A program made the translations under genes and the position numbers. This document shows positions 24,322 to 64,000 of a stretch of 64,000 bases of DNA, in pieces. The notes beneath the pieces were generated by a model. The model made no database searches. It was given only the letters and a program-made list of their open reading frames with translations, and was not told the origin of the DNA. Position 1 is the first letter of the stretch. The number at the start of each line of letters is the position of its first letter. This stretch comes from Macrostomum lignano. Its lineage: Eukaryota. Location: positions 1 through 64,000 of the forward strand of contig NIVC01001427.1 in NCBI GenBank assembly GCA_002269645.1, in the 5' to 3' direction.

Positions 24322-24625
24322 GGGGTTGGTAGCCTGCTAGTGGTTAGAGCGTCTGACTCATGACTTGAAGGTCAGGGGTTCGATTCCCGATCCCACTGGA
24401 ACAATTTCTGTCCTTGAGCAAGATACTTAACTCTGCATTGCTTCAGTTCACCCAGCTGTAAAATGGGTACCAGCACTAGCTGGGGTAGTTGAGGGTGTGT
24501 GGCTTGGACTGAACAGCCGTACGCAGCCTTCAGATGCCCCGTGAAATAGCTGCGGCTGAGCTGTCAGTTGCACATCTGGCCCAATTGGGGCAGGTGTAAT
24601 CAGTTGTTATATATATAGTATGATT
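24322..24625 (+). mobile_element. tRNA-derived SINE with CORE-like central domain, copy 1
   Basis: A-box-like and B-box (GGTTCGATTCC) head, then CCTTGAGCAAGATACTTAAC...CAGCTGTAAAATGGG. 15-bp TSD AGTC[T/A]CTCAGAAAAA at 24307-24321 and 24626-24640 (one mismatch). Confidence 0.88.
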
Positions 24626-26590: not shown

Positions 26591-27422
26591 GACATTCAAA
26601 TTTAGTTTGTGACAACTGATGCATTGTGCGAGCTGCAAGAATCGCAGCGGTTTCAGTGGCACAGTTGCAATCAGATTCTTTATTAAGTAAACAATTTTTG
26701 ACGGGCGTCAGTCCGCTCATCTCACACCAAAGCCTGTCTCAGCCCCCGGTCCATTAATGCCCCAGACTCTCTGCTCACCTCATCTTTATGGCCTTCTCAT
26801 TTCTCTTCGTGAAATTTGAAACTGTGTTTGCCTTGCGCGAACTTGTCGAGCCTCTCTGCATCCAGCTCAATTGAGTTGCTACACACCTCGCCGCCTCCAC
26901 CATTTTGTTGTTGCTTTCGCTTCAGCCTTAGCCAGATGCTCAGTTTCTCTAGCCAGTAGCCTCATCACTCGCTAGCATGGGCCGTGAGCTCTGCGCCTGT
27001 CTCTATTCTCCTGCCTCTCTCTCTCTCTCTCTCTCCCATCTGCATTTCAAGCCCGGCGCGGTTGCCAAGCCAGAAGTTTTTCTATCGGACCCCCTCAGCC
27101 TCAACAAGCAGCACTGGCACAGCGGGACTTTGAAAGCATTCTGAGATGGAGGAGAGAGGGGGTGGGGGTCGGCTTGAGTGCTCCTGAGCTCTGATTTGTG
27201 CGGCCACAGCTGGCTGTCAGTAGCCGAGTGCATTAATTATGGCAGCAGCTGCTCATCTGCCTGCGATCTCTGCTCTCTATACTTCTTTCATTCTTCGCCC
27301 AAATCTGCTGCCGTTTCTTTTGCGTGTTTGCGCCGAAAATCCAGTTCAATTCTCTGCGCTCTGAAAGCCCCCCCGGCCCGCCTCGTCTACAGTGACAGGT
27401 CCGCCCCCCTCCCCCCTCCAGC

Positions 27423-37864
<10,442 letters not shown>

Positions 37865-40320: not shown

Positions 40321-42400
40321 TCAGGCGGACAAGTTCTTGTATACTTTGAAGCAGTGGTTGCCAGTGTCAACAACTACCAGCTGATTGAATTCGGGCAGAT
40401 ATGCGACACCCTGCGGACCGTACAGCTGGTCCGCGTGGGTGCTCACGCTGGAGAGGAACCGGCCTTCGCTGTTGAATATCTGCGGGTTCGTTGCGGTCAG
40501 CATGGAAATTCTTCAGCAGAATCAATCAGTTTGTTTGATATATTCAACCAACGTAGCCAGAAGTGAACTAAATATTTTTGGATCTTCAACCAGCAGAGTC
40601 TACTGGAAGTGGGATCGGGATTGGCGTTCTCACCTGAAGCGACGAGCTGCCCCAGTCAGCCACGATGATGTTGTCCCTGATGTCTACTGCCACCCCGGTA
40701 GGCGCGTTGAAGCGTCCGGCCTCCCGGCCGGTGCAGCCGATGACGAACAGGAAGGCGCCCTGGCTGTCGAACACCTTCACGCAGTGGTTGTGAAAGTCGG
40801 TCACCACCAGCTCGTCCCGAGACGTGGTGGCGATGTAGTGCGGCCCCGCGAACTGGTGCTCGGCCACGCCGCGGCTGCCGAACCGGCGCTCCACCTTGCC
40901 GAGCGGCGTGAACAGCAGCACGCAGCAGGCGCGGTTGTCCACCACGGCCACCCGACCGTCCGACAGAACCGTCAAGCCCTTCGGCCCGGCCAGCCGGTTG
41001 GCGCCGAACCGCTTCTTGTAGCGGCCCTCGGCGCTGAAGACGTGGACGCAGCGGCCGTCGTAGTCGCTGACGAGAATGTCGCCGGTCTCCGCGGACTCGG
41101 CCACGTCCACTGGCCGCTGCAGATGGCCGGGCTCACGACCGCGGATGCCGAACCGGCTGATGAAATCGCCGCCGGGGCCGAATGACTGCACATTGGCGTT
41201 GTTGGCGTCCACCACCAGGATGCGCCCGCTGCGGCCCGAGACGCGGGCGCCCTGCGGGTTGCTGAACTCGCCGTGGCCGCGGCCGCGGGCGCCGACCCGC
41301 AGGACGAGGTCGTCGGGCTCGTGGTTGCCAAATGCGGCCGCCGAGGCGGCGGCTCGCCGGCTGACTCCTGTCCGGCTGACGGAGCGGCGGAGGGAAGCGG
41401 CGACGCCTCCACCGCTGCTCGCGCTGGTTAGCGAGCGCGTGGAGCCCCGAACGGCGCCGATGCTGCGGCTGGTGGCCGGCATGCGGCTCGAGCTGGCAGG
41501 CCGGGTGGGCCTGGCGGGCCGCCTGTGGACGCCGTCGCTGACGCCGCCGCCGCCGGCGCCGCTGCCGTTTTCTGGCGCCACGGCGTGCACGGCGAACGGG
41601 GATCCGCGAATGTGCTCGCCGAGCAGCTTGACGTTGAGGTCGTAGACCCCCGGCCGGTCCAGCTGGAATTTCACCCGCAGCTGGTCGTCCTCCTGCTGAA
41701 CGGCCACCGAGTAGGAGTTCTCGAACGGCGAGCTGATGCTGGCGGCGCAGTTGACGCTGGCGAGGGCGGCCGGATCAACCGGCCGGTTCTGCGAGTCTCG
41801 GGCCAGCACGGTGGCGACGCACTCGGTGGCCACAGGGCAGGCGCGCAGAAGATCGCCGCCGGCCTCCTGCAGGCGGCAGTTGGCTGCCTGGACTCCGCCA
41901 AGGACCACCAGGCCGACCAGGTGCAGCCGGCTGAGCAGCTGGTCCAGCTCGGCCGGGAAGAAGGACAGCGAGTCCGACTCGCTCGGGTGGACGGAGGGCC
42001 GCTCGGCAGCCAGCTGGGCTGCGGCCGCTTCGATCTCGGCGGAGTCGGCTGGTTGATCCTCCAGCAGCTGCAGCAGGGCGGCGGCCGCGGCGTCGGCGGC
42101 TTCGGCGCGAGCCTCCTCGGCCTGCATGGCCTCGGCGCGGGCGGCGGCCAGCTCGTTGAGTGACTCGGCCAGCCGGGCCTTGCGGTTGCGCAGGAATCGC
42201 TCCACCATCTGGAAGCTGCGCTCCATCTGGTCGAGAACTTCGCGGCGTTCGGCTGGCTCGCGCTCACGAATCCGCGCCAGCTCGGCGCGCCGCTCCGACC
42301 AGGCCTGGCGCGACTCAGCGGCCACTCGGCGCCACTCGTCGGTTTCAGCGGCGGCCGCTGGCACCGGGGCCTCGTCGTCGCCTCCTTCGTCGCCGCTCAT
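40321..42400 (-). CDS. TRIM3: TRIM2/TRIM3-like protein: coiled coil + filamin/Ig domain + 6 NHL repeats; no RING or B-box seen
   Basis: Exons 42400-40634 and 40479-40321 (phase 0; 641 aa). Filamin signature YDLNVKLLGEHIRGSPF. NHL region DDLVLRVGARGRGHGEF...LAGPKGL...FAGPHYIA...DFHNHCVKV...FNAPTGVAVD...LYGPQGVA...DTGNHCFKVY is collinear with vertebrate TRIM2/3. The symbol means TRIM2/3-like. Confidence 0.9.
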
Positions 42401-44282
42401 GGCCGCTGGCTGGTGAGTTTTTCGGGGTGGTGGTGGGGGGGGCAATTAGCTGCAGCAATTTTTTTCGAGAGTTTCTTCAGCTGCCGGTTACTCGGCTTTC
42501 GCAGCCCTCAGCTAAATTCCTGCCGCCACTTGCCAGTGCGAAGCGGAAGACGGGGGGCAGAGAGCTGCGGCTGTGCAAACTGCGGCCAAGCAGGCCAGGC
42601 GGTTGCGAGGCCGCTCGGAGTTCGCGTGGTGCCGAGTTGGCCACAAGCTGGAGCGCCCAGCAACGGTACAGCAACCGGCCGCCCCCCCCCCTCCTACCCA
42701 ACTCAGCACCACCTGCCCTGCCGAATACGAGGGCTCATTTCTAGATCGGCTGCAATCGAGCATGAAAGAAAAATGTGTGTGCAGAAATATTCTGGCCAGG
42801 CATTGGATTGCTGGGTTCAGCTGCATGGGAACTGCTCGCTTGGGGTTGCCGCCTGCTCTCTGGCTGTGGCTGGCAAAGTTTGGCTCAGCTGCAGACACAG
42901 GATGCGCAGACGAATGAGTCACAGCTCTGCTTTGGCGCGGTAGAAACTTCTACTAAGTAGAAATAAAGAAACTGTGTTTTTCAGTTTCAGTACACTGTCC
43001 TGAAGGCTTCCACACGCCACCATCAAATGAGGCATCAAATCACATGTCTGACGTACAAAGCTACACGACATGTGGCTTTGATAGCCTGTGTGAGTGACCG
43101 AGTCAAAAGTGGGATCCAAGTGCCGCAAGCAGGAGGTCCTCGGACTTTTTGGCGGACGCGATGGGAATAAAGTCATCAACCCTGTTTGTCCATTGGAGCG
43201 TTTCAAACTATAACACACTAGTGATACACTAGACTCGGCAATGCTTACCTGCAGTTGCTTCAAAGGTCAGACAAGTAGAATTATCGAATTACTGAAAGTC
43301 CGCTCAGACCTATAGCTGAAGTGCTTGAGTAAGGCGCTCAGACTGCATGGGTTTGAGGTGGACAAAAACTGGTTGACGCCCTCTCAGACGGAGAAGTTCT
43401 GTCCTTCTGCCAATTCCGTGCAGCCCTGCAGTGCTCCGAGTTTTGCGTGAGCCTCGTTTTATAGCTGGCAGACGGAGCACTTCTGCCTTGGTCTGGCCGG
43501 GGCTGTACGACCCCTGTGCAGAGAGAGCCCAGTGCTCTGGCCCGGACTGCAGGGGAAGGGAAAGGGAGGCGAGCGGAAGGGGAAGAAGATTTCAGTACAG
43601 CGGGAGACTCAAAATTCCCTGGCGCCCCTCTGCCCCCCCCCAGCGCGAGATCGATAGTGTTAAATCCCTAAGGCTGCAGCGATTGCCTCAGCTCAGCCAA
43701 CCCCCCCCCACCCAGCCGGCCTCAGTGAATTAATTTTCTTTGCGTGTCGCCCTGGTTGGTCGCCCTGCGCGTGGCCTGTCGGCTCAAAAATAGTAGGCGG
43801 CGGCGGCAGTCCAGGGCAGAGTCTGCAGCAGCGGGGTCTCCTCATGTCCGGCGTACTTGGCATGCAGAGCACCCGGACTGGTGGAGCCGGTCAGGGCACG
43901 CAAAAAGGCCACCTGTGAGATCCATACGACCTGTCAGGCCCCTCCTGTCAATAAGAAACTTGATATGACTTAAGCGTCTGTGTCGCTGTCGCTGAAGTGT
44001 CGCTGGGTGAGACAGGACCTGTACAGTCGTATAAAATTTCTAAGGTGTCAGACAGGGTGTAGAGTGTACCAGACAGCCAATGAGAGATACATGTACCGGA
44101 GAAAGTCATCATGCTTACAGGTGCATTAATCCGAAATGAATAAAAATGATCGACTTGTCTAGGAATATTAGCAATCGGTTCCTAACCAAACCTAGTCCCA
44201 CTTGAAATTGCCTAGGGGCTACACTTGTGGCTAGCTAGAGGCTACCTAGGGGGTTGTCACTAGATTCCTTAGGGGTACCCTA

Positions 44283-44351: not shown

Positions 44352-44595
44352 TCAATATAAAACTGTTTACAATTTTGATATGCATGCACTCTGGACTTCT
44401 AGTGGGCCCTTTGGGCTTGCAATTAAGAAATATTGCAAGATATTGCTAGATCTTGGACGATAAATCAATGATCTAAGAATTTTGGAAGAATTATCAAAGA
44501 CCATTTGAATAGTCGACTTACTTCTTGAATTAATTCAGAAACTGAGGCATAGCGCATGCAGGATGAATAGTTTAATTAGTGGTGAATCGCACTAA

Positions 44596-44994
44596 TTTTG
44601 GCGCCACAGGCACTCATTTTGGCGCCACAGGCACTCATTTTGGCGCCACAGGCACTCATTTTGGCGCCGCAGGCACTCATTTTGGCGCCGCAGGCACTCA
44701 TTTTGTTGCTGCAGGCACTCATTTTGGCGCCGCAGGCACTCATTTTGGCGCCGCAGGCACTCATTTTGGCGCCGCAGGCACTCATTTTGGCGCCGCAGGC
44801 ACTCATTTTGGCGCCACAGGCACTCATTTTGGCGCCGCAGGCACTCATTTTGGCGCCACAGGCACTCATTTTGGCGCCGCAGGCACTCATTTTGGCGCCG
44901 CAGGCACTCATTTTGGCGCCGCAGGCACTCATTTTGGCGCCGCAGTCACTCATTTTGGCGCCGCAAGCACTCATTTTGGCGCCGCAGGCAATTT
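44596..44994. repeat. 21-bp minisatellite (TTTGGCGCCGCAGGCACTCAT), about 19 copies
   Basis: Directly visible. Confidence 0.96.
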
Positions 44995-46926
44995 TGTCGC
45001 CCTTCATTCATGCAAAGCAGCAAAAACCAGAAGTAAGAGTTACAAAGTAAGCAAAAAGAGTCTAAATTTATCATTTAAAATGTGGAGTGGCCAGACCATA
45101 CTACCCCCCAACTTTAAAAAGTGGGGGGCGTTCTTATGGATACGCCGATGAGTTACGCTGAATAGCAGACTCTGGGTTCAGTTTTGGAACTGTTTGCGCC
45201 ACAGGTGAATGATGCCATGATGACGTCTGCCGCATTATTTGCTCAATTCGATTTTCGGATCCTTAATTACTTCCCTCCTTCTTCCTTCTTCTGTATGTCT
45301 CTACGTCATCTAGAATTGTCTTTTCTTCCGTAGATAATACCGTTTTTGTCTGGATCCCGGCTTCCACAAGCCCCCTCCCGTGTTGCATATGTAAGCTCGT
45401 ACTCGTAATGAGATATGCAATTAAGTATTTTTTCTCCAACTTTTTTGTTTTTGACGGATTAATTGAATTGCCACTGATGGTCGATTTCACTTGATCAATT
45501 TATTTCTTTGTTCAGTTCATGGTAGTAAATCGAATTTGCTGAGCTCTTTCTACCTCTTTCTTCCTCTTTCTACCGAAGATTAAAAAATTCTCATTCAAAT
45601 TTCTGCTCAAGCGCCGATCCTTCCGCGGCATTCTTGGACTGTTGTTAAACTTATAGTCACCGTGACTCGATCATGCATGTACAAAAGGACGACTTAAGTA
45701 GACTAAGTAAGTATAATTTCATGTAATATAAAATATAAGTAAGTAAAATCGAAAATTAAGGTCGTGCTTGCGATAATTTTTAGATAAAATTTTTGAATGA
45801 GTCGATTTCGTCTAAGCCTAGGCCATTGGGTGGACAAATCATTCACTATTTGACGAGTCGTCCTTTAGTTTTGACCACAATAATAATATTCTGTGGATTT
45901 CACCTTGCTAATTAGGTGAATCTGTCGCAAACGGGCAGCAATCAGTGTTGAATAGAAACGAGGCTTTTTGCGCGAGTTTTTCTGATTTGTTGCATCACAG
46001 CATCGACATCCCACTCCTTCCTATCCTAAAGCATAGATTAAAATGACGGCCGGTTTGACGCAGTGTTTCGCTCATAGAAGCAATATAATGCGGAATGATA
46101 TTGTAACTTTTAAAAATAAATAGACTTTTATTCTAGCGATCTAAGGCGTTGGATTTTCGTGGGCCTATTTTTTGCTCAGTAAACGTAAACTTTTGTTATA
46201 AATAATTTATTGTCATTAATTTTAATTTCACATGCACTGACTTAAAGATTACGCACTCGATTCGATTCGGTTCGACTTTAGTAAGATTGTTAAAGTCATA
46301 TTCGTCTTTTTATTCCTTTTTTAAATGTTACTATATTCTACTTTATTATTAAGCCTATAATAGATCTAGGCCTATCATAAATTTTTGTAGGCCTAACCCT
46401 AAGCGTAGCTAATATAAAAAGCAATGGCAACAGCTCCAGCACCAGAACCTGAGAACCTTTTTCTAGCAGGCTCTATGGTTGTATGAATCTAGTAGTGCTA
46501 ATAGTGCAAAATAGTAATTGAAAATTTTAATTGGTAAAAACTTATTAAAATTTAACTTTAACTATAAACATTTTTTACTTTTATTTAAATTATAAGTCAG
46601 GCAAGATCTTGATCTTGCAATTTATATTTAAGATTTTGACTTTTCTCTTAATTGAATCTCAATCAAATCTTGATTTTAAAATGCATCAAGAATCTTATAA
46701 TAGGGATTTCAATGAGATAAATAGAAATATAACCAAATGAAAAATATGATAAAATAGAAAGTATTTTTCTAGCTTACAAAATAACCCAGATAACTAAAAT
46801 AGAAATAAGTAGTATAGAAAGAAATTTCTATAGGTAGAGACTCTAATGTCAATGAAATTTTGAAAGTTAAAAATATTCAATATCTTTTGATAAAATATAT
46901 AATAAATAGAGCTTGATTATACTAGT

Positions 46927-49122: not shown

Positions 49123-50794
49123 GATGTACCTATCTATCCTTAGCTTTAGGAATAAGTAAGATAAGAATATCATATTTTTTTATAAATGGCATTGATTGCA
49201 TTGCTAGATCCATAGCCATTAAAAATGGTTTTGTATCCTATATAGGCCTACTAAAAATGAAAATCTTGCTTTCTTGCTTGTGCGCAATAGTGAAACTAGC
49301 CATTGTCAATATTGACAAATGGCTTGTATTAAATATTATATATTTTTGTAAAGTACTAAAAAGTTAAATTTGATTATTTCTAAATTTAGGAATGTTAATT
49401 ACATGCAAGCATACTAATTGATCTATCAAGGATATTATCTATATATAGATCTCTTTCCATTATAGTTTTGGTATTTTGTTATTATATATTATGCTAATTG
49501 ATAGAAATCTTACAATAGCTTAATATTACTAACAAATTCACATAATGTTTAGTACGTCTTAAATAAGGCCTAAATAAGGTCTATTTTTCTAGTTTAAAGC
49601 TTTGTAATATAATATAAAATGGCTTTTTTGTATATTTCAGCTAATTTATATATTATATAGGATATATACAAGAACAAAAAAGCAATAGTTTACTGACCTT
49701 ATTCTAAGAAGCTGTATAAAAAATATGATTATATTTACAATAGACCTAGATATTTTGTGTCTTTAGGGTAAAATTAAATTGAAAATGCATAAAAAATATG
49801 TAATATAAAGTTGTAAAACTATTGTTAAAGTTATTGTTTTTGTTACTATTTATGATATAATGCTATCAAAATCAATGTTTGTAAAAATAGTGTTTTATTG
49901 GCAAGATAAAGTTATTTATAACTTTGAACAATAAAGTTCAAAATGAATAGATGTTTTACAATTTTCTTTAAAGACAAAGACAATAATAAATATTGTGTAC
50001 AAAAAGCATAAAATAATCTAATTAATAATATTAAAAAGTTGAAATATGTCAATGATTTGTCCTTATCTTTTAGTTTCAACCTTTTAACATTATTATCTAG
50101 TCTTATCTAGTCTATCTAGCATTTATTTTGAGTATTTTTAAACCAAAATTATTCTATATCTATATCTGTAGCTAATAAATTCCCCTTAACTTCCCATAAA
50201 TTTTGATGCAGTTAAATCCAATGGCAACAGTTCCACCATTCACTGTAATATAGTAATAAAGTAAATAAATATAATCAAACCCATCACTCAATAGCAGACA
50301 TTCATCTTAACTTTAGCCTCCATTATCCCAACCACAACTTGCATGTGGCATTGGAAATCTCTGAGGTCCCTCACCTCATAGACTTGAGAGTTGGAGATGT
50401 CCTGGGCCTCTTGCATTGAAAAAACATTCATCTTAACTTTAGCCTCACTATATCCCAACCCCAGAGACTTGAGAGTTCCCCTCACGAAAGCTTAAGGTCG
50501 CAGTTATGAAGTGGCCAGTATTCTAGATGTAGGAAATGTGTTCACATAACCATATTTATATCCATATGTTCTGTTTAATACCCTCCATATCTGCATCTTC
50601 TGTAGCTACAGTGGAACTGTGTATCTAATCATGCTATATTTAAAGCCAGTCAGTTTTTTTTACTTGCAGTGCCAATAGCAATAAGATTGAACAATGCTAT
50701 GGCGTGGCTGAGTTCATATGGGCTGCAAAAACCATATGATTTCTCACAGCTCACCCTTTTCGCATTGCAGCAACGGTAGCTAGCCAGCCTGCCA

Positions 50795-51151
50795 ATGTCT
50801 CTTAGCGTTCGTACCTTGAAGGTGTTTTCCAACCGCCTGCTTTATCGAAAGCAGATGATCGTTAGCGTCACCCACGGCGGCTCCGGCAAAAACGTCAGCA
50901 AGAGTGACGTCAAGACTAAGCTGGCTGAGAAGTTCCGCACCACGCCGGATCTCGTGGTCTGCTACGGCTTCAGGACCAGCCTTGGCGGCGGCCAGTCCCG
51001 CGGATACGCGCTGGTGTACGACAGCCCCGACTACATGAAAAAGTTCCACCTGGTCAAGCGAGTCCGCGACGCGAGCCGGAAGCAGCGCAAGGAGCGCAAG
51101 AACAAGAAGAAGAGGCAGGGTCATAAGAAGGAGAAGAAGAAGGCCAAGTAG
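50795..51151 (+). CDS. RPS24: 40S ribosomal protein S24 (eS24) paralog, intronless and divergent
   Basis: NRLLYRKQM, TTPD..GFRT..GGG, YDS.DY.KK and SRKQRKERKN motifs; intact 118-aa ORF; AATAAA about 90 nt downstream. Confidence 0.9.
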   Translation: MSLSVRTLKVFSNRLLYRKQMIVSVTHGGSGKNVSKSDVKTKLAEKFRTTPDLVVCYGFRTSLGGGQSRGYALVYDSPDYMKKFHLVKRVRDASRKQRKERKNKKKRQGHKKEKKKAK

Positions 51152-53652
51152 GAAGTCATGAGAAGTTGAAGTCGTAAGGGCGAAGTTGTGTGCAGACTTT
51201 CTGGATTTAAAAATGTCTGCTTTTGCTCGCATTGCAGGCAAGAAATAAATATTGCTCCATGTGAGAGCCGTGAATTGACTAGCTACTTACAGTCGATTGC
51301 TACAGAGGATCGCGCGTCTTGTGGATTGAAATGCTTGCTACTTTATTTTGAAGGCTTCGTTTCTTTACTTGGAAATTTTTTTTCAGTTCAAGGCGTCAGT
51401 TAAGATTAGAACTGAAAAATTATTGTCTGTAATGTAGGTCTGTAATGTGCACTATGGACGTCGTAGTCCACTTCGAACAACACGGACAAAACTGGAGCTA
51501 CTGCTTAGTACAGGAGAGATGCGGGAATAGCCAGAGCCAGAATAGCAATCCATTCTATTCATTCATCCATGATTAGGGCCCACTCTGCTTTCTATGGGCA
51601 AAGTTGCTTGGGAATAATCTTGCAGTTTTGAGCTGCATAGCATTCCTGGTTAAAGTTGCAATTTCTGACTGATGTGGCCACAGAATATTCAGTGAAGTGG
51701 CTCAAATTTTTTCCGACTGAGACTATGGATGGTCCGAAAATGTTGTCGAGTTTTTGGGAGGAGAAAGTTAACAAAACTGTTGCATCGCTGCGAGAAGGGC
51801 ATCCAGATGAATGGCAGCTTTGTAGAGCTCGCTGAAATTGCTGAAGAAATGAAAAATTGTGCCGGATTTTTGACTTGATGAACACGGGCAAACTTGGTTA
51901 CTTTTGCCATAGACAAAAATCGTAATCTTCAATCTCGAGGCATGGACTTTCATTTACGATTACACAGTTGCGTGCAGCTATATAAGGCTTAAAGTATAAA
52001 GCTATTAGTTGTTAATATGTGTAAAATTGTTGGGTGAAAATTTCAGGTTCATACGTTTATCTAATCAAAAGTTATAACAAAATTCTCGTTACTTTTGAAA
52101 CACCACTCGTAAAATTGTACGTAGAATAAAAAATATAGAATCCTAATTTTCTAAACGAAAAACTTTAATGAATGGTCAAATCGCGTAGAGCTAGCCGGTA
52201 TAAGACATCAAAAGATGAACCTGGGTCTGATTCCTATCGAAAGCAATAACAATTGTTCTGAAAAAATGAAAACTTCCTATCTCCGTAGTGTATTTTCTCC
52301 GGAAAAAACATGCCTCCTAAATTTTTTACATTCTTCTACTCGAGTAGTCCTTGCTACCTACTAGCAGTAGACGCTATGGGCAGTTCTAATTGACAAAATG
52401 AGAACTAAGGCTTGGAGTATGGAGGCAATCCTTGGTGAGCAGTAGGACGTACCTGTCTGTTAACATTTTCGATTAATTTAGTGGCACCTTTGCTCCTGTA
52501 TTGCCAGTAATAATTGCGACTAATAGGCACTGGAAGCTTTCAGCAACTCTGCAATTTGGCTGATAAAACTGGAGATGCGCCAAAATCTTGTGCTGCTTGA
52601 AGAGTTCTGGAGGCCAGATCGCTTCGCTTGATTGTCTGTTAGACCAGCTCTTGGACCACTTTGTCCCAGCTGAAGAGAAGAGAATTGCTTTCTAACTGTC
52701 TCACTGTCTTATGCCTTCATGTAGTCAAGGGTCCTGCGCTATAACTAATTAATTGTCTGTGTAGCCACGCGTTCGGGTGGCCTACTCGAACTCTTAAGGT
52801 ATCTGCAGCGTCTGCCGTGAGAGCGAGTCGTCTCGAGCGCTGCTCAGAACCCACCTGACAGGTCTTGTTTCGCCATTGTTCAGCCCTCTGTAGCTCGGCT
52901 TGTCTGCTGAAAGAAACAAATTACTTTTATACATCTTCGCCCGGCCCCGTCTCGAAGCAGGCAGATGCAGCATCGCAGCAGCACTTCACTGCCGCACTCA
53001 TTATTGTCATTTTGACATATACGCATGCCAGCTGGGGTATTTCAATTTCTATCTCAGAATTGAGTTACAGTAAATATACTGAGCGAGGTTGAGCTAGCTG
53101 CTCACTGTAACAGATACGGGTGAGAGCCGTACTCTGGCAGACTATATATTTCCCTTTGCCTGGCAGCGAAGCACCTACATTACAATCGACGTGACAAGAG
53201 ACCTCGCTCGGTTTGTCATCGAGGACTGCAGGGTAAGAGAGCTTGCATGCTGTTTAGTTTATCCTGTGTTGATGTACAAAAATCCTCCGAGGGTTTCATT
53301 GAGATGCAAACCCAATAGGAGCTGTGCGAAGCCAGGCTGAAATTTCCGGAAGAATCAGTGTCTGGCATGAAATGCGCGTACGAGACACCTACATGTAGTC
53401 TCCGTCTGTATCTCGTACAGGGGTCGATAAATGCGCTGTAAATAAGAATGAAATTTTTAGTCCTAAAATATGGAAGAAAAGCTTCTGCATAAGCACTACA
53501 GCACCGTTGACTTCTGTGCATCGGAAAACAAAAAAGCTTCTACTTTGTCCGTTGTACGTCGGACTGAATATTCATTCATCTTCTTCATCGAGCAACATTT
53601 CTTCAGTCTTAGCAGACCACGCACCCTGCATGCAACTCCCCATAGCACCGCC

Positions 53653-55294
53653 ATGCCGTTGCGCCAGTTCAGCGCCGACGAAGTCGACGACTTCTACCTG
53701 GCCGCTGGGCGCGGTGACATCGACGCGATGCTTCGCCAGCTGGACGCCGGCCTGGACGTCGACAGCGCTACGAGTCGGGAATTTCATCGCACCGCCTTGA
53801 TGGCGGCCGCCATGACCGATCAGGCTGAGGCCGCCCGGCTACTCATGTCGCGGGGCGCAGCGCTGGACGTGCGCGACCGCGAGCTTGGCTGCACAGCGGC
53901 TCTGCTGGCGGCCCAACAGCAAAGCCGCGGCGTCCTCCGCTTGCTCACCGAGGCCGGAGCCCGACTCAACGCCTTCAATTCGGCGGGCTACTCGGCCTTG
54001 TTCTGGTGCATCGAGAACAACGACGAAGCTTCAGTGGCTCTTCTGCTAGAGGCCGGCGCCGATCCGAGCCGTCGAAACCCGAACGGTCTGGCGCCGCTGC
54101 ACCTGTGCGCCGCCTTTGACCGAGTGGACATTGCCCATCGCCTGCTGGAGGCCGGAGCCGAGCCAGATCCGGTAAGCTGCGAGTTGCACGGAAGACACAC
54201 GCCGCTGACGCTGGCGGTCTCAGCTGGCGGCCGGCCGCAGATGCTGGAGATGCTGGCATCCAGCGGTGCTGACCTGGAACACGCGTCCGAGGAGGGCACT
54301 GCGATGGCCCTGGCCAGGGGCCGCCCAAAGCTGCTCACCTGTCTCGAGTCGCTGATGCGAAGGTTTGAAGAAAATCTAGCTGAATTAGGCAGCTTTTTCG
54401 CTGGGTCTGGTTTTCCAAAATGTGAACATTTGGAATCGTGATTTCTCAAACTTACCTTTTAGTCGTCGAGCGTCCGAAAGGAGACGCTCCAGCACTGTAA
54501 ATGCAGCCGCGGTAGCCAAGCAGGCATCAGCGGCGCGTCGACAGACAGCCCGGCGCGCTGCAGCGACAACGTCCCGCAGGCCGCGCTCTGCGCTACCCTC
54601 CGGAATTTACCCGTGTGCGGCGCGGCCCCGCGGCACTTGCCTGCTGGCCGGGTGCGCTCGGTTCGCGCACGAGTTCGATTTTCCCGCCATGCCGGGAAGC
54701 GAGGAGCGGCTCGCGCTGCTCACGGACACGTTTAGCGACCTTGGCCTGCTCATCAGGCCCGCAGTTGGGCTCGCCGGCGGCGACCTGCTCGCGAGAGCGC
54801 AGCGCCTTGCTGCCGCGGACCACTCGGCTGCCGACTTGCTTGTCTGCGCCTTTGTCGGCTACGGCCTCAGCGGCGGCATGGTTGGTTTCGACGGTAGGCC
54901 GACCGACATCGGCCAGCTGGTCGACTGCTTCTCGCCAGCTGAATGTCCAAGCCTGGCCGGCAAGCCGAAGCTCTTTCTCTTCCTGCTGTCTGCGGCCCCG
55001 CGCGCTCGCGGCCCAGGCCCGACCTTTCCGGAGCCCAGCCAGGCCGACTGCTTGCTGGCTTACGCCTGCGTTGCTGACGCCAGCAGCTGCGGCCGCCTCA
55101 CCGACTTTCTGCACCGAATGCGGCGGGCCTTGGACACCGAGGCCGAGCACGTCGATTTCGGCCGGCTGTTCCTTGGCGCCAGCGAGCGGCTTCTTGCCGC
55201 GTCTGCCTCGACGGATGAGAAGAGCGGCTTCTCCCAGCCGGCGCTGCTGACGGAGGTGCGGCACAGCCTGGACAGACAGCTGCTCTTCCGTTAG
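53653..55294 (+). CDS. Ankyrin-repeat / caspase-like (C14 fold) fusion, catalytically inactive, 513 aa
   Basis: Kozak-like CCGCCATG at 53653. Exons 53653-54362 and 54463-55294 are joined by a 100-nt phase-2 GT-AG intron (1542 nt in frame). About 6 ankyrin repeats (TALMAAA, SALFWC, PLHLCA, TPLTLAV). Caspase p20-like landmarks PRGTCLL, DHSAAD, CPSLAGKPKLF. Confidence 0.87.
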
Positions 55295-55619
55295 CTGTAG
55301 CGGTGCCGGATGTTTACTAAAAATAGAATGAGCTACTAAATATCACAAGTGGCCTGACTGGACCTACTCTATATGTCTAGATTCTATAAATTTCCCCAAA
55401 AAGAACACCGTTTTGTGTTTAAAGTCTCAACTAAAATTTAAAATCAAAATGCTTTGTCTTTCCGCATGAGGTTTTTTTCACGAGAGTTTTTCCCGCCGAG
55501 GTTTTCCCGCAGGGTTTCCCCAGTCGGAATTTCAAGTCAAATATAGTCTATAGACATTGCTAGACTAGATTAGATTTCAAATCGAAAACTTCCTGCGGGA
55601 AATTCTCATAGACCGAGTA

Positions 55620-55783
55620 AGCCTAGTGGTTAGAGTGGCGGACTCACGACTAAAAGGTCCTGGGTTCGATTCTCTCGACCCAATCGGAACAATTTGTCCT
55701 TGGGCAAGACACCCAACTCTACATTGCTTTAGTTCACCCAGCTATAAAATTGGTACCAGCATTAGCTTGGGGTATTGGGGGTA
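55620..55783 (+). mobile_element. tRNA-derived CORE-like SINE, copy 3 (3'-truncated)
   Basis: AGCCTAGTGGTTAGAG...GGGTTCGATTCT...GTCCTTGGGCAAGACAC...CACCCAGCTATAAAATTGGTACC. Confidence 0.82.
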
Positions 55784-57007
55784 AAATCAGAGACTAAAAT
55801 ACCTATATTTTGTAAATGGGATCTCCAACTATGGGGATCTATTCGTAGAATGACTGATCCCTGCATCTAAAACTATCGACTGTAATTTCGAAATTACGCC
55901 ATTTCGTTATTTGACGTTCTGAAATCAATCAGTTTTTCATTTTTGTTCATCGAATTTCTCAAGGACATCTATATTAGCTAGACTAGATTAGTTGATTTCC
56001 GAAGTGACTCCTGTGGTCCTTGAATCATCTGTCTTCTCTTTCTTGGATGTGTTTTATCGTATCTCACCTGCCTCAGGTATGACTTTAGCATGACTTCCCA
56101 CAGCATCTTTCTTTTTGGGGCTCTGTCTGAGGGAGAAGTCTCGCTGGTCACTTCAGGAACCGACTACAATCGATTAAGTACAATACATGCAGGGACTCCA
56201 CTCAATAGCTTGAGTTAACACTTCCTCTTGCGCTTGTAAAGCGCCTCCCATCGAAAATGACCAAGTGAAGCTACTTACTGCATCAAATTAAGTAGTATAT
56301 GCAGTACATACAGCATTGTTAGACATTGTTACGGTACATGTGTGGTTCTGAAAACAGACAATAATTTCGACTCATGCCACAAAAGTGTCCAAGAAGCAAT
56401 TACGTACGTCCGTGCCACGCGTCACGACTATAGATTATTTATTTATTGATCCGCTGCGCAGAAACTGTGTCTCAGTCTTGGCTTTATTGAATTTCGTTGT
56501 TTCGTTTCGTACGACTGGCAGTGTACGAACGTACGTATTGAACTCAAAACAAGCCAGAATGGAAGGTAAATGAGAAACAGGAGTGACGCGTAAAGGGGGC
56601 AGGTGCGAAGGGAAATTCTGAGTAATAGTGACACAATAGAAAGCATTTACCCTGCTAACTAAAACCCCTTTGTCAAGCAGACGGATTAACCCAAACAGTT
56701 AAGTCCCGCCCACCGAAGCAGAAGCACATCGCGAAGGAGAGATGACGTAGAGGCGACCCCACACCGTTTGTTTGACACCATCTGATCCTAAGAGTAGTGC
56801 ACATGAAAATACAAAAAATTACCGGAGCAAAAATTTTTTTCGGCTAAACGCCGTTTCAATATGCCGCTTTCATTTTCGGATTATGCAGGTAAATTGTACA
56901 TTGCTGTGATAATCGAAAACCTGATCATTGAACAATTTTTGGTATTCACCGTTATAGAGAGTCCGTCTTGGCTCGTTGTCTCGTTTGATGGCGGTGTGAA
57001 CGAGCCT

Positions 57008-59100
57008 TCAGTACACTCCAAGGCATTGTGTGTTTAGGCTTACAAAGAAAATAACAAATGGCACGACCATCATTGCGACTCCGAAGATGACAAAAACTTT
57101 GAAGAACACCCGATCAGCGGAAGATCCAACAGTCTTCCATTCGTTTCCCCCAAAACTGACGTTGGAAGCCTGCGACACCGATACTTCGCCATCCGCATCG
57201 GCTGTGGTGCGTGTGACTGTCCGCTTAGAACTTTCTCCGACAAAGAATCTGTTGAAGAAGAGTGCACGGACGACCCGACTGCTGACGCTGCTCTCTTGCC
57301 TGAAGTGACAGCTGAGAACGAATGCGTTGCAGAGCACATTTACAATTGTCATGATCACGGCCAAGCTGAAGTACCAGGCTGGAATGTGAGGTAAGTGTCA
57401 ATTTCAGATAGACTGCTCACGCAATGGAAGCAATCGAGAGACTCACTGATAAACGGCACGGACTCGCTCTGCGTGGGCGTGTAGTTGACAACCAGCTGCA
57501 GGAACACGCACATGGACAGCACGATGGTGATGCTGAAGGAGACTCGCTCGCCGCACTCGGGAGGCAGGCAAAAGGCGAGCGCGGAGAATCCAAGGAGAAG
57601 AATGCAGGGCAGCATCAGGTTTATCATGTAGAAAGTCGGAAGTCGCTGCAATTACAAATCCTGATCTACATGTAGAACTCCAAGTCTCAGAAACACTATC
57701 TCAAGAAATTTTATCAAGATCTGAACCAAAACTCACTTGAAATCCGACCCGGAGCTCGGCTGTGTCGTACAGGCCAAACGACCCGTTTTCTAACCGGACC
57801 CACAGAATGCAGAACTCGCTGCTCTTGATGACGTACCCCGACGGTGAATCATTCTCATTCAGAGACTTGATGCGGACTCGAGTCGATCCCGTGACTTGCT
57901 GCAGACTCGAGAGCCTGACGAGACAATTTTGCTCATCGAACGGAAACTGCTGCATTTGCATGCTGCACTTGGTGGACAGAATCATTCCGGTGCTCCACAG
58001 CACAATGCCTGAAGACATCACCATAAGAACTGCGTTGTCCTTCGTAGCATCCGAGAGCTCCACCCTAAAGTGAATTGTTTAAATGAAGGCACTGCGACCT
58101 AGCTTTTGGCAGTCCTTGTCATCTTTTTTTTTCATACCCAGACAGTATGCTATGTTAGAAAATCATCCTACTCTATAATTAAATTTAAGGTATATGCTTA
58201 AACGACTCACACATCGTAAAAAGAAGCGTCAGGTTGCCACAGGTACGAAGCCGGAAGGCTGATTGCGCTGATGTTGTCCAGACTGGAGTTGAACTTTCCT
58301 TTCCAGGCCAGGCGACTGTCGGTCCAGTGCTGCAATTAGATCGTATGTCAATCGTAGATTGACGTAGATTGTCCTAATGGTCAGATGTGCAACCGACAGC
58401 TCAGCCGCAGCTATTGTGCGGCGCCTCTGAAGGCTGCGTACGGCTGTTCAGTCCAAGGACTGGAGGGTCGCCACACACACCCTAAATTACCCCAACTAGT
58501 GCTGGCACCCATTTTACATCTGGATAAACTGAAACAATAGATGGAGAGTTAGGTGTCTTGCTCAAGGACACAAATTGTTCCAAGTGGATTGAGAATTGAA
58601 CCCCCGACCTTTCAGTCGTCGGTCCGACGCTGTCACCACTAGGCTAAACCTACAACCCCCTAGATCGTATAGTTTAATATAAAAGCACAACAGGCATAGT
58701 AGGGAAACTGACGTGGAAATTTCTGCGAGTTTTTACGAGTACAAACTCACCAAATTAAGCCACACCTTGAGTTGTATCTCCTGATTTGCGGAATCCTAAA
58801 ACGAATTCGGAACAACTTTCGGATTCTAGAAATGGTTGTTCAAAAACATAAAATAGACTTAAGCAGCCCTCTAAGGCGCAGCATCCAAGCACAACTCACC
58901 ACTTTAACGATGGAGTTCAGATAGATGAAGACATTGAGGGTGTTGGCGAACCCGCTGTCAGGTGGCGGTCGGATCGCTTTGTTATACTCGGTGAAGAGCT
59001 TCAGCGCTGCCGCGACGGCATCGTCAGGTGAGGCGGGCGATGCGGCCGCTGACACAGCGGCGCCAAACAAGGCCAGGTAGATGAGGCCTCGCGTTGACAT
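57008..59100 (-). CDS. Divergent Cys-loop ligand-gated cation channel subunit (nAChR-like, non-alpha), copy 1, complete, 420 aa
   Basis: Exons 59100-58900, 58795-58751, 58329-58211, 58064-57737, 57645-57447 and 57378-57008 (1263 nt, all GT-AG, phases consistent). Signal peptide, WTDSRLAW, WQPD, Cys loop CSMQMQQFPFDEQNC, M1-M4, and M2 starting PPECGERVS. Confidence 0.93.
58347..58660 (-). mobile_element. tRNA-derived CORE-like SINE, copy 4, inside intron 2 of channel copy 1
   Basis: Full-length reverse-strand copy; exact 10-bp TSD TAGATCGTAT at 58337-58346 and 58661-58670. Confidence 0.9.
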
Positions 59101-60380
59101 GCCGGATGCTTTAAGAGTCCTTCAGGCACGGAACGCAAAATGTAGTTGCAAATCTGGCTAAATGTACGATTTCTGGAAAAGCGGACTTCAATCCCTCTGC
59201 CAATTATTTTAGAGCTGGCATGTGGCATGTTTCTGTTTGCTTAGTATCAGAGGGCGCGAGCTGTCCAGGCTTTCATCCTGAGTTTGTTCTCCGCGGTGTG
59301 GCGCAGGAAAATTTCGCGAGAAAACCAGCCCGTTAGCCTTGCAAAAGCCAATTTACTCAGCGATTTCATGCGAGTCAGTTGGTTTCTCCCTGCTCTGTGT
59401 TGTCACAGCAAACTTTTCTCTTTGTAAATTTTCTGTATTGTCCAGCCAGTCCAAAGAGAACTTTGAAAGTCATTTGTTGAAGTTCAGGCACAGTCACGAA
59501 GTGGTCCTGTGGAAATATCATTATGCCTACGCCAGTGCCGCTTGCATATATACTACTTGCTAAGTAGCTTCAACTCCTTGCCTTTTATACATTCCACAGT
59601 AGTTTGGAGTTGAAAAACAACATCGGTCTCACAAGTAGGAAGCAGAAAAATAGAGAAGAGTGACGAGCAAGAGAGACAGCTGGGACCAGATTTCCAGAAA
59701 TAAAGAAAAATGAGAAGCAAACAACAAAACGCCAAGTCAAATGCCACTGATTTAGCGTTTCTTATCAAAGTGTCGCAGAGGATCAAAGATGGATTTTGGA
59801 AGAATGGCTAAAATGGGTTAAATGTTAAGACCTAAGAAATCTTCTGGGATGTGCTAGCTGCCACGGCTCGATTCCAAGTGCAGTCACATTAAGTTCACAT
59901 TATTTAGGGCCGCTGTACACTCCTGCGTGAGTGTGTGTCATGACTGCGTACGTATTCGCGCGCCTGTGTACCTGCTCAGAGGAGTCGGGGGGAACGGGCA
60001 GCAATGCCTCTCGCCGGTAGTGTGACAATGTAGCTTTAAGCGCGCCAGGATGCACACAACTCCTGCCTCTAAGTAACTAGAAATATCCTGGCATTGACTG
60101 ATGGCAATTTGTATGCTTTGTCTTGATTGACGATGCTGGATGGATGGATGAGGCTTTGGCGCTTGTTCAAACAGGGGGAAAAACAATTCCCAAACCTGTT
60201 ACTCCAAAAGATTTTCTCAGGAAGTTTGATGAGATCGAGAACTTTTGCTCAAGTGCTAAGCTTTTGAGGTGGGATATCTGGTGTCCAAGTGGGGAGTTGA
60301 AGTGGTTAGCAACTGATGAGTCTCTTTCATGCTTTATGCGAGGGCAATACCTGATTGGCCAAGGTACCAGCGTGCTAGAC

Positions 60381-60690
60381 TAATAATAATAATAATAATT
60401 GATGTATAAAACTTGCCCTAATGGGCAGATGTGCAACCGACAGCTCAGCCGCAGCTATTGCGCGGCGCATCTGAAGGCTGCGTACGACTGTTCAGTCCAA
60501 GGACTGGGGGGTCGCCACACACCCTCAATTACCCCAGCTAATGCTGGCATCATTTTACAGCTGGGTGAACTGAAGCAATGCAAAGTTAGGTGTCTTGCTC
60601 AAGGACACAAATTGTTCCAGTAGGATCGGGAATCGAACCCTCGACCTTCAAGTGGTGAGTCCGACGCTTTAACCACTAGGCTACAACCCT
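60381..60690 (-). mobile_element. tRNA-derived CORE-like SINE, copy 5, with (TTA)n tail
   Basis: Reverse-strand copy with A/B boxes at 60630-60685, the CORE-like block and (TAA)6 at 60381-60398. Confidence 0.88.
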
Positions 60691-61730
60691 CCCGTTGTAG
60701 CCTCGTTTTGCTTGACTACTAAGAGTAATATGAATGAACATGCACTGCCTATGGTTTCCGGCCTTCCAATGCTAACAGATCTCTTGTAACCCACACTCAC
60801 AGAGTCGCCCGGTGTAGGCTCACAGCTTTGTTGTTGTCTGAAGCTGACTTGATTGACAGCTTGATGGAGGACATGGCTTAATGGCCGCCTGCCTGACAGA
60901 GTATTCTAAGCAAGCAATTAGGATTCAAACGAGAAATGTGAAAGAAATTATAGCTTTAATTAATCATTCAGGCAAAGAAGCAGCTTAAATTAATTAATTC
61001 TCGGTTTAATAGGTTTCCTATTATATCCGGATACTGGTTATCGAGTTTGAGGCCTCCCTTTTCCTAAGGATAGGATCTGCCGACCGATTCCGATACCCTT
61101 AGAGGATTATTGATTGATTTATTTTGTTACCCTAGAGTAACCGATAGGAGCACACGACTCCGATTCCGTTATTTCTAGAAGAAGACGCCCTTTCTGGAGG
61201 ACCTCGTTATTGATATAGAGTTGAATTTGTTATTAGGGCGCATCTTTGATACTGATTTCTGCACTCGAGGAACATTTTGATTGCTGCACTCGAGGAATAC
61301 TGCGACGTCGACGGATTAAATTGTTGCGCTCTCACTTTCGGCCGATTTTGGAATCCAAGAAGACTACTCCGGAGGAAGACGTGTTGAAGAAACGAGCTCG
61401 GAGAACCTGCCCGACAAAGAAGAGGAGCCGGCACCAGTAAGTGATCACTGAATTTTGTTTGCAGGCTTGAGGTCTGGAAGTGGGAGTTTTCGGGTGACTA
61501 ATCACCACCCGATCAAACTCTTTAACAATGGGACTAACAACCCTGTATGATTATAATTGAATTTATTGGATTGAATTATAGATTAAACTTCTGTGGAATC
61601 AGTGAGTGGGGCCGCAGGGCCTCGTATATTTATTTTCGTAAATTGATTAGGGTGGTTAGTTGGGTGCTGATACGAAAAGAGGATTGGAGTACGCGACTGA
61701 GGAAGAGGTAAGATTAATGGGCCAATCAGA

Positions 61731-61923
61731 AGATAAGAATGACAAGGGTGAATCAGAAGGCCTCGAAGCGAAGAGATAAGAATGACGAGGGTGAATCAGA
61801 AGGCCGCGAAGGGAAGAGATAAGAATGACGAGGGTGAATCAGAAGGCCGCGAAGGGAAGAGATAAGAATGACAAGGGTGAATCAGAAGGCCGCGAAGGGA
61901 AGAAATAAGAATGACAAGGGTGA
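61731..61923. repeat. 43-bp tandem repeat, about 4.5 copies
   Basis: GATAAGAATGACGAGGGTGAATCAGAAGGCCGCGAAGGGAAGA recurs at 61775, 61818 and 61861. Confidence 0.93.
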
Positions 61924-62640
61924 ACTACAAAACAGAGTAAACAGGCAGATATCTGAAGAATAGATTAACAAATTTGCGACACAGGTTCTCGTTGATAATG
62001 GCGTCACTTAAGCAGTGTGGTAGACAAGGTTCGAGAACAATAGGAAGTAAGTAAAACAAGAGCTATGGGACAATGAGGGAACAATAAATTGCGGAAGATG
62101 AGAAAATAAATTCGGGTGTTTGGGTTAGTGATCACGAGATTTGGGCGTGCGACACTGCCACACCGTCTTTCTTGTGCGTTCTTGGACTTGCGGGGATTTC
62201 AGAATTCGATGTACGTTCATGCGTACTCACAGTAACAATAAGAGTATAGTATGAAAAGGCAGTCAGTTTCTGGTCTAGTAGTACTTTTCCACTCACTAGC
62301 GACCGAAACTGCGCTTCAATACGATGCGAAACCAATATTCCCGTGTAGAAAACAAAAATTTGAGTATGTTGGGACTTTGTAGAGTCATTAAAAGTCCCAC
62401 GCATCTTGTCCGTGAGAATAGAGAAAAAGGAATTTGTCAACTTAAACCTCAGTTTGGATGCCTCCGCTATGGCTGCGCTAAACTAAAGAGACTAAAGAAA
62501 GAGATGGGAATATCAACGGTCATCACCCTCCGCCGTTGATACACACAACAGATGTACGAGTAAAAAGCGACTGAAAACTATGCAACAGTCATGCGATTGC
62601 TCAATTTTGCCTTTCGTTTGATGACGCTGTGAACGAGCCT

Positions 62641-63705
62641 TTAGTACTCTCCTAGGCATTGCGTGTTCAGGTTTGCAAATAAAAAAGAAAATGGCACCGC
62701 CATCATTGCGACTCCGAAGATGACGAACGCTTTGAAGAACACTCGATCAGCGGAAGATCCGACAGTCTTCCATTCGTTTTCGACAAAAGTGGCGTTGGAA
62801 GTCTGTGATGCCGATACGTCGCCATCTGCATCGGCTGTGGTGCGTGTGACTGTCCGCTTAGAACTTTCTCCGACAACGAATCGGTTGAGGAAGAGTGCAC
62901 GGACGACCCGACTGCTGACGCTGCTCTCTTGCCTGAAGTGACAGCTGAGAACGAACGCGTTGCAGAGCACATTTACAATTGTCATGACCACGGCCAAGCT
63001 GAAGTACCAGGCTGGAATGTGAGGCAAGTGTCAAATTCAGATAGACTGCTCACGCAATGGAAGCAATCGAGAGACTCACTGATAAACGGCACGGACTCGC
63101 TCTGCGTAGGCGTGTAGTTGCCAACCAGCTGCAGGAACACGCACATGGACAGCACGATGGTGATGCTGAAGGAGACTCGCTCGCCACACTCGGGAGGCAG
63201 GCAAAAGGCGAGCGCGGAGACTCCAAGGAGAAGAATGCAGGGCAGCATCAGGTTTATCATGTAGAAAGTCGGAAGTCGCTGTAATTACGAGCGTAGAATT
63301 CCTAATCTAGTATTTCATGTTTCTACGAGTAAAGCATGATTTCAAGAAATTGTACCAAGATCTGGACAACAACTCACTTGAAATCCGACCCGGAGCTCGG
63401 CTGTGTCGTACAGGCCAAACGATCCGTTTTCTAGCCGGGCCCACAGAATGCAGAACTCGCTGCTCTTGATGACGAGCACATCAGGCGCATCATTCTGGTA
63501 CAGGGACTTGATGCGGACTCGAGTCGATCCCGTGACTTGCTGCAGACTCGAGAGCCTGACGAGACAGTTTTGCTCATCGAACGGAAACAGCTGCATTTGC
63601 ATGCTGCACTTGGTGGACAGAATCATTCCTGTGCTCCACAGCACAATGCCTGAGGACATCACCGAAAGAATCGCGCGGCCCTCTGTAGCGTCCGAGATTT
63701 CCACC
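62641..63705 (-). CDS. Divergent Cys-loop ligand-gated cation channel subunit, copy 2 (last three exons; 5' exons not in the window)
   Basis: Exons 63705-63378, 63278-63080 and 63011-62641 have the same lengths and phases as copy 1 exons 4-6, offset by 5633-5641 bp. The ORF is intact. Confidence 0.92.
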
Positions 63706-64000
63706 CTAGAGTGAATTGTTTAAATGAAGGCACTCATTGAGAGCAGTTTCAATTCGTCAGTCGTCAGAACGTCAGAACTTAATTTCTTCAGTACTTAGTC
63801 TCTGCAGTGCATGCATCAAGCAGGATATCTTTTTTAGTTTGATTGAGTAGCTTTTTATTTAATCCATTTGCTTGTAGAGCGTATGTCCGAGACACAAAAA
63901 TTTTGTTGCACTGGGATACCTGCAAAGGTTTTCCTAATTGGGTTATTTTATACCTAAGTTCGAAATTTTCCCTTTATCAGTTTGCGTTGCCTTAAGAAGT

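Follow-up and report, generated by a model that had tools for sequence, protein, structure and literature searches.

Lineage-specific tandem expansions of genes resembling those for nicotinic acetylcholine receptor (nAChR) subunits have been described in lophotrochozoans (Jiao et al. 2019, PMC6896357). Gene conversion that leaves certain functional segments of tandem duplicates untouched is known from the primate L/M opsins (PMC3213168), and the nAChR-derived chemotactile receptors of cephalopods provide a case of diversifying pockets (PMC11526382). Here we describe a pair of nAChR-like genes, A and B, arranged head-to-tail on the minus strand of contig NIVC01001427.1 (positions 1-64000, referred to below as the window) in assembly Mlig_3_7 of the flatworm Macrostomum lignano. 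The assignment to this contig (281,799 bp; GCA_002269645.1) follows from an ORF for an NHL/filamin protein in the window that is 98% identical to an M. lignano protein, and from contig positions 40795-61151 (locus L003), with which positions 50000-61151 of the window agree at 100%. The 1.1 kb shared by the two genes is a mosaic that was probably generated by short-tract non-allelic (interlocus) gene conversion between tandem paralogues, as judged from its silent sites, its introns and a third, homeologous sequence. The original prediction had regarded this locus as the best candidate for an undescribed system in the window. That status is lost, since both the tandem nAChR-like genes of lophotrochozoans (PMC6896357) and segment-sparing conversion (PMC3213168) are already on record, and the A/B locus is a known kind of event.

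The likeness to the lophotrochozoan expansions lies in the tandem arrangement of nAChR-like Cys-loop subunits, many of which have neither canonical acetylcholine (ACh)-binding residues nor a known ligand (PMC6896357). However, the molluscan genes form largely intron-poor retrogene arrays, whereas the A/B flatworm genes have six exons, and gene conversion is not mentioned in that paper (0 occurrences). As in the L/M opsins (PMC3213168), we are dealing with adjacent paralogues, short conversion tracts and trees that differ between segments, and in both cases islands of divergence are found in exons that code for the environment of the ligand or chromophore. The opsin introns, however, are homogenised more than the exons, while in A and B one intron is homogenised, the other is not, and the 3' end is unconverted. 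Moreover, for the opsins, selection against conversion is backed by population data. The cephalopod chemotactile receptors (PMC11526382) have likewise lost ACh-pocket residues and expanded in one lineage, and variation among them is found in the binding pocket. Their ligands, expression and structures are established, as is diversifying selection, whereas A and B have a pairwise ratio of nonsynonymous to synonymous divergence (dN/dS) below 1 in the patches described below. Orthology of A and B with these receptors is unlikely, as the nearest relatives of A and B are all M. lignano proteins.

Gene A is complete (Table 1). Every splice site is GT/AG, the open reading frame (ORF) is intact, exon 2 is a classic 45-nt exon, and exon 4 consists of 1 nt plus 109 codons. 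Gene B lies upstream of A, with a period of 5.6 kb, and the three exons seen in the window comprise 299 codons with an intact frame and conserved splice sites. Exons 1-3 of B, if they exist, are located beyond position 64000, and a tblastn search of positions 63735-64000 found no exon-3-like sequence. The span of the original prediction, 57737-63705, runs from the 3' end of exon 4 in A to the 5' end of exon 4 in B. The A/B block has 90.4% identity across 1121 columns (blastn), and the homology is limited by points 29 nt upstream of exon 4 and 27 nt past the stop codon; in a sensitive self-comparison, the flanks showed no further similarity besides copies of a short interspersed element (SINE). 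A third gene for a pentameric ligand-gated ion channel (pLGIC) was not found by tblastn within the 64-kb window. Of the tandem array that had been proposed, the window thus holds two copies and only two, B being represented by exons 4-6. In its listing of loci, the NCBI annotation of Mlig_3_7 shows no called gene at the position of gene A, and the present analysis documents an intact, unannotated pair of orphan nAChR-like genes in M. lignano.

Table 1. Features of the A/B locus in the window, with pairwise synonymous divergence (dS) and dN/dS between A and B, and the pattern of variable sites among A, B and the homeologous copy A2 (a bar separates the sequence that differs)
Feature	Position	Strand	Counterpart	dS	dN/dS	Site pattern	Remarks
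Gene A, complete	57008..59100	minus					six exons, 420 aa, nAChR-like Cys-loop (pLGIC) subunit
Gene A exons	59100-58900, 58795-58751, 58329-58211, 58064-57737, 57645-57447, 57378-57008	minus
Gene B, exons 4-6 within window	63705-63378, 63278-63080, 63011-62641 (62641..63705)	minus
A side of A/B homology block	56981..58093	minus	62614-63734				1.1 kb; only A/B block
B side of A/B homology block	62614..63734	minus	56981..58093
Patch 1 in A (strict, codons 3-14)	58022..58057	minus		0.43	0.88	A=A2, B different at 13/14 variable sites	exon-4 codons 3-14, residues 125-136; DNA-level deep block 58012-58064
Patch 1, codons 2-17				0.65	0.40
Patch 1 in B	63663..63698	minus					peptide ATEGRAILS
Patch 2 in A	57833..57859	minus				A=A2, B different at 13/13 variable sites	exon-4 codons 69-77, residues 191-199; deep block 57830-57866
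Patch 2, codons 67-77				1.18	0.37
Patch 2 in B	63474..63500	minus
Homogenised tract 1 (middle of exon 4)	57867..58011	minus	B 63508-63652	0.06	0.14	1 A=A2|B, 2 A|A2=B, 2 A=B|A2	beta5'-beta6, Cys-loop, beta7, loop B region
Exon-4 tail				0.10	0.14
Intron 4	57646..57736	minus	B 63279-63377			A=A2|B at 27/27	deeply diverged (30%); 3' half unalignable
Homogenised tract 2	57197..57645	minus	B 62830-63278			4 A=A2|B, 7 A|A2=B, 3 A=B|A2	exon 5 (M1-M2), intron 5, exon 6 5' half (M3, cytoplasmic-loop start); ~2% diverged
Codons 110-236				0.045	0.39
Exon 6 3' half, diverged block (last 62 codons)	57008..57196	minus		0.34	0.35	A=A2|B at 25/29 variable sites	cytoplasmic loop, M4, C-terminus
tRNA-derived SINE-like repeat, intron 2 of gene A	58369..58650	.					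87% identical to 60413-60688; also matches 24323-24629, 28066-28330, 55620-55782

Exon 4 of A and that of B differ at 14 amino acids in 109 codons, and these differences are strongly clustered. Six fall in a first patch, LSDATKDNAVLM in A versus ISDATEGRAILS in B (L3I, K8E, D9G, N10R, V12I and M14S), and six in a second patch, NENDSPSGY in A versus YQNDAPDVL in B (N69Y, E70Q, S73A, S75D, G76V and Y77L); only Q39L and V89A lie outside the patches. The 54 codons in between (codons 15-68) contain one replacement, Q39L, and four silent changes, at S17, T25, N46 and S67. All of these counts are exactly as originally predicted. Two 12-codon windows hold 12 of the 14 replacements (permutation p<=2e-4). 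At least two nucleotide changes were required for two of the six replacements in patch 1 and, as multiple hits, for four of the six in patch 2.

The clustering is not confined to replacements. By Nei-Gojobori pairwise estimates for A versus B, dS in the patches is 10-20 times that outside (~0.05), whereas dN/dS in the patches is 0.35-0.9. Codons whose residue is unchanged differ at 4/9 positions in the strict patches versus 11/197 elsewhere (Fisher p=0.002), and when three flanking codons are added to the patches, at 7/19 versus 8/187 (p=7e-5). Two or three nucleotide changes are found in 6/12 replaced codons within the patches versus 0/7 outside them. Across all 465 silent sites, the silent differences are over-dispersed (index 2.68, permutation p ~1e-4), with block values of dS ranging from 0.05 to 1.18, which is the mosaic silent divergence expected of interlocus gene conversion. 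The introns behave in the same way: among the 91 columns of intron 4 there are 27 mismatches, with 8 gap columns in addition, compared to 2/68 (3%) for intron 5 (Fisher p=6e-6). Four segments of the shared 1.1 kb, comprising both patches, intron 4 and exon 6 in its 3' half, are ~22% diverged, whether silent or replacement sites are counted, and alternate with two to four segments that are ~2% diverged. The latter probably include the tail of exon 4 and 29 nt at the end of intron 3. Positive selection on amino acids cannot produce a local rise in synonymous and intronic divergence; segments of different ages can.

A third sequence allowed these segments to be compared as trees. Contig NIVC01000301.1 is colinear with positions 52225-61297 of the window at ~97% identity (>9 kb). 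It takes in gene A and 2.2 kb upstream of it, and this homeologous locus (L002) ends at the equivalent of window position 61297, short of B. It carries A2 (L002 15786-16898), an intact copy of gene A that is 98.3% identical to A. In the blocks of high divergence, A and A2 agree against B at 78/83 informative sites, compared to 5/19 in the blocks of low divergence (Fisher p=1.7e-9). The distance between A and B is ~0.22 in the high blocks, and that between A and A2 is ~0.014. Across the 594 nt of the low blocks (central exon 4, exon 5 with intron 5, and exon 6 in its 5' half), the patterns are star-like: five sites group A with A2, nine set A apart from A2 and B, and five group A with B, and the distances are 0.024 between A and A2, 0.024 between A and B, and 0.017 between A2 and B. 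The Mlig_3_7 assembly represents three homeologous subgenomes with a single-nucleotide polymorphism (SNP) divergence of 1.9-2.4% (PMC10733133), and the divergence of the low blocks agrees with this value. As the paralogue is as close as the homeologue in the low blocks, sequence must have been transferred between the two loci around the time that the subgenomes split, or later. The incongruence of trees between segments is a further property by which interlocus gene conversion is recognised.

A2 itself differs from A (L002 15705-18020 versus window 56900-59200) at 12 amino acids, four of which lie in the signal peptide, with a ratio of nonsynonymous to synonymous proportions of differences (pN/pS) of 0.25. 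In exons 4-6, A2 has the residue of B at 5/7 of its differences from A (Q161L, F251V, V284G, F339L and F343V). Either several replacements are peculiar to A on this contig, or a B-type copy was the source of a conversion of A2.

Because the silent-site mosaic and the block-wise incongruent patterns among the three sequences occur together, we infer gene conversion, and the patchy conversion that had been put forward as one of two explanations for this locus is supported by both. Most likely, conversion has either made the well-conserved parts of an old pair of duplicates alike in recent times or pasted foreign patches into a young pair. The exon-4 patches would then be stretches left unhomogenised rather than sites of an adaptive burst of replacements. 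Their persistence might be due to selection that removed converted alleles, as in the L/M opsins, to a density of mismatches that blocked heteroduplex formation, or to chance. With regard to a possible donor, no other copy of either patch is present in the window at <=25% mismatches. If this scheme applies, non-allelic conversion has been acting in M. lignano on the time-scale of the recent genome duplication. A caution also follows for similar loci: clustered receptor-loop differences between tandem duplicates can mimic adaptive diversification where, as is probable here, they belong to a conversion mosaic.

What the patches might do depends on what kind of receptor A and B encode. The product of gene A matches the Pfam domains Neur_chan_LBD (9.6e-35) and Neur_chan_memb (2.1e-20), has a signal-peptide-like N-terminus, and contains four hydrophobic segments at residues ~241-259, 266-284, 301-319 and 392-410. 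It has the pLGIC architecture, that is, an N-terminal ligand-binding domain followed by a four-helix transmembrane domain. Its Cys-loop, C155-x13-C169 with FPFD, is CSMQMQQFPFDEQNC (residues 155-169), and that of B is the same save for Q to L at 161. The best matches among solved structures are the nAChR subunits alpha-1, beta-2 and alpha-4, and 5-HT3A (E ~1e-37 to 1e-40). M2 of A carries the motif PECGER, with PECGERVSFSITIVLS aligned to PTDSGEKMTLSISVLLS, and the Glu at -1' (GE[KR]) is present. By overall similarity and by this Glu residue, A belongs to the cation-selective nAChR/5-HT3 branch, its selectivity being predicted.

The pocket of A departs from that of an ACh-binding subunit. At the loop-B position corresponding to W149 of alpha-1 and W151 of beta-2, A has Leu, and the vicinal Cys pair is absent from loop C, so that A lacks both marks of an ACh-binding (alpha-type) nAChR subunit. 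The segment from "EF" to "QR" has 26 residues versus 35 in alpha-1, which makes the beta9-beta10 hairpin (loop C) about nine residues shorter. In an AlphaFold model of exon 4, of moderate quality (pLDDT, the predicted local distance difference test score, is 70) and used for secondary structure only, this hairpin has a two-residue turn. The loop-A Tyr and the loop-D Trp are retained. Because the loop-B Trp is replaced by Leu, the vicinal Cys pair is missing and loop C is shortened, the principal face is unlikely to bind ACh, and A and B are orphan non-alpha nAChR-like subunits.

The patches were assigned to loops from the HMMER alignment to nAChR beta-2 (5kxi_B) and alpha-1. Patch 2 corresponds to residues 164-172 of beta-2, which is loop F (beta8-beta9). 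Patch 1 corresponds to residues 100-111 of beta-2, mainly the beta4-beta5 linker plus the start of the beta5 strand, and only M136S (V111 of beta-2), perhaps together with V134I (N109 of beta-2), falls at recognised loop-E positions. The loop-E positions on beta6 (F119 and L121 of beta-2, here L144 and S146) do not differ between A and B. In the AlphaFold model of exon 4, patch 1 spans a loop and the start of a strand, and patch 2 lies in a long segment without regular structure. The proposal that both patches lie in loops of the complementary face is therefore correct for patch 2 and only partly so for patch 1, which consists mostly of the beta4-beta5 linker and the start of beta5, with few loop-E positions. 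Over the whole comparison, A and B are alike in the Cys-loop, the loop-B and loop-C regions, the pore and M1-M3, and unlike in loop F, the beta4-beta5/beta5 segment, the cytoplasmic loop and the M4 tail. As the contrast is confined to these segments, any functional difference would be expected on the complementary/interface side of the extracellular domain.

All close relatives that we found are M. lignano proteins. In searches with exon 4, only M. lignano relatives exceeded 40% identity, and a word-index search returned P0008 as its sole match. A third paralogue in M. lignano is represented by P0008 and P0076 (79% identity in exon 4). In both of them the patch-1 peptide is that of B (ATEGRAILS), although outside the patches P0076 differs at 12 sites at which A and B agree, a comparison made at the protein level only. 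As P0008/P0076 share patch 1 with B while A groups with B elsewhere, the tree changes between segments here, too. No two of the three paralogues A, B and P0076 have the same loop F. P0008 and P0076 themselves show one difference over 133 shared residues, G versus D at exon-4 codon 9, which is the position in patch 1 where A has D and B has G. Among fused models from an older assembly, P0009 comprises three genes and P0003 ends with a second exon-4 segment. These models join neighbouring members, and tandem arrays of the A/B subfamily are therefore real. Across the family, the mean column entropy is 1.83 for patch 1, 1.71 for patch 2, 1.89 for the loop B region and 1.98 for the loop C region.

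The other explanation offered for this locus was diversifying (positive) selection on ligand specificity. In its strict form, adaptive replacements would have built up in the complementary-face loops E and F once a recent duplication had produced the tandem pair, with no need for conversion. The concentration of 12/14 replacements in two windows (p<=2e-4), the identity of patch 2 with loop F and the location of M136S at a loop-E pocket position would all fit this explanation. So would the distinct loop F of A, B and P0076, and the two exon-4 segments of P0003 (P0003a and P0003b), which differ mostly in the same two regions. Moreover, with no usable principal face (loop-B Leu, no vicinal Cys, very short loop C), the complementary face could matter, and the chemotactile receptors of the octopus (PMC11526382) provide a precedent. 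We nevertheless consider this explanation improbable. Selection of this kind should raise dN/dS above 1 without raising dS, whereas dN/dS in the patches stays below 1 in pairwise estimates and their synonymous divergence is 10-20 times higher, with an enrichment of purely synonymous codon differences. Non-coding intron 4 is equally deep while intron 5 is nearly identical, and in the low blocks B is as near to A2 as A is, a relationship that selection on amino acids cannot yield. Finally, a lack of enrichment of variable sites at the pocket across the family had been named beforehand as a result that would speak against diversification, and among eight M. lignano paralogues (a small sample) the columns of the two patches do not exceed the remainder of exon 4 in variability (Mann-Whitney p=0.32). 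Relaxed constraint as a sufficient cause was rejected as well, since it predicts neither the synonymous nor the intronic mosaic.

It was also asked whether the two copies might be uncollapsed haplotypes, or subgenome copies of one gene misplaced in tandem during assembly. Mlig_3_7 does combine three subgenomes and has 36% of its length in chimeric scaffolds (PMC10733133), and the low blocks of A and B are about as diverged as subgenome copies. However, the true homeologue of the locus, NIVC01000301.1, is colinear at ~97% over 52225-61297, whereas A and B have only 1.1 kb in common, with 22% divergence in four blocks, and are flanked on either side by sequences that are not related. In addition, the fused models P0009 and P0003, which come from an independent older assembly, also join neighbouring members. 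An artefact of this kind is extremely unlikely, and uncollapsed haplotypes, which had been named beforehand as a result that would refute the original prediction, are excluded by the colinearity of the true homeologue.

A refinement that does not exclude our account of a conversion mosaic combines it with selection, following the opsin model: alleles that lost the loop E/F difference through conversion would have been purged by purifying selection, and the patches would mark a difference in function between the two subunits. All of the evidence for the mosaic applies to it, the mechanism is established for the L/M opsins (PMC3213168), and at 37-53 nt the exonic patches left unconverted are very short, with converted sequence on both sides. 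On the other hand, intron 4 and the 3' half of exon 6 also escaped conversion, which can be explained without selection related to a ligand; a high density of mismatches can by itself halt the extension of a heteroduplex; and there are only two patches, whose coincidence with loops is not improbable because surface loops diverge first in old duplicates. Selection may be maintaining the difference in loops E and F, and we entertain the refinement as a whole only tentatively. If selection does protect the patches, the locus would be a compact natural experiment on the roles of loop F and beta4-beta5 in a pLGIC.

Several points weigh against a conversion mosaic in its plain, neutral form, or limit how closely its history can be read. 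Under neutrality one would not quite expect repeated conversion to leave out patches of 37-53 nt within an exon. Variability in the family is as high in the loop B and loop C regions as in the patches, yet these regions were homogenised between A and B, and the differences between P0003a and P0003b are mainly at codons 1-26 and 65-79. On the last two counts, some part for selection in holding the patches apart is conceivable. The data agree to the same degree with partial homogenisation of an old pair and with the import of patches into a young, partial duplicate, and the DNA-level comparison consists of two paralogues with one homeologue as the third sequence. B, seen as exons 4-6 only, may be a complete gene or a fragment, and the protein collection that was searched contains no transcript-derived protein for A or B.

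Going further, A, B and P0008 might belong to a Macrostomum-specific, nAChR-derived clade without an ACh pocket, as suggested by the missing loop-B Trp and the stub of loop C. Its members would contribute the complementary face, act as accessory subunits, or sense environmental chemicals in analogy to the chemotactile receptors of cephalopods. Specificity for ligand or partner would then be set by loop F and the beta4-beta5/beta5 segment, which selection against conversion would keep distinct. We offer this as a speculation with rather little chance of being correct in full.

The SINE-like repeat that was seen in the flanks (~280-310 nt) is present in the window in at least five copies (24323-24629, 28066-28330, 55620-55782, 58369-58650 and 60378-60689) that are 76-87% identical. 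Intron 2 of gene A has 421 nt because one copy was inserted into it. The copy at 28064-28136 was called as a transfer RNA (tRNA), tRNA-Val(CAC), by ARAGORN, and the head of another copy, at 60621-60690, attains the Rfam gathering score for tRNA. Rfam and ORF scans of the 3.5-kb spacer between the two genes found only this tRNA-like SINE head and no convincing gene. The same spacer contains a 43-nt tandem repeat at 61731-61924 (4.5 copies, 96% matches).

Elsewhere in the window there are large minisatellite arrays at 15270-20490 and further ones at 25955-26662, 29001-29624, 30419-31073 and 44579-45151. The minisatellites have an extreme strand composition, with a GC skew of ~-0.33 and an AT skew of ~-0.33 at 16-20 kb, and long spurious ORFs in several frames. 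A remnant of a non-LTR (long terminal repeat) retrotransposon lies at 9079-11295 on the minus strand, with adjacent ORFs for RVT_1 (8.5e-29) and RNase H (4.8e-12). An exon for a haem-NO-binding (HNOB/H-NOX) domain (3e-44) is found at 2072-2713, also on the minus strand, and presumably codes for the N-terminus of a soluble guanylate cyclase. Three further genes are annotated in the NCBI release of Mlig_3_7: one for a filamin/NHL-repeat protein at 40586-42445 on the minus strand, and, on the plus strand, an intronless gene for a ribosomal S24e-like protein of 118 aa at 50795-51151 and one for a protein with ankyrin repeats and a caspase domain (Peptidase_C14) at 53470-55294.

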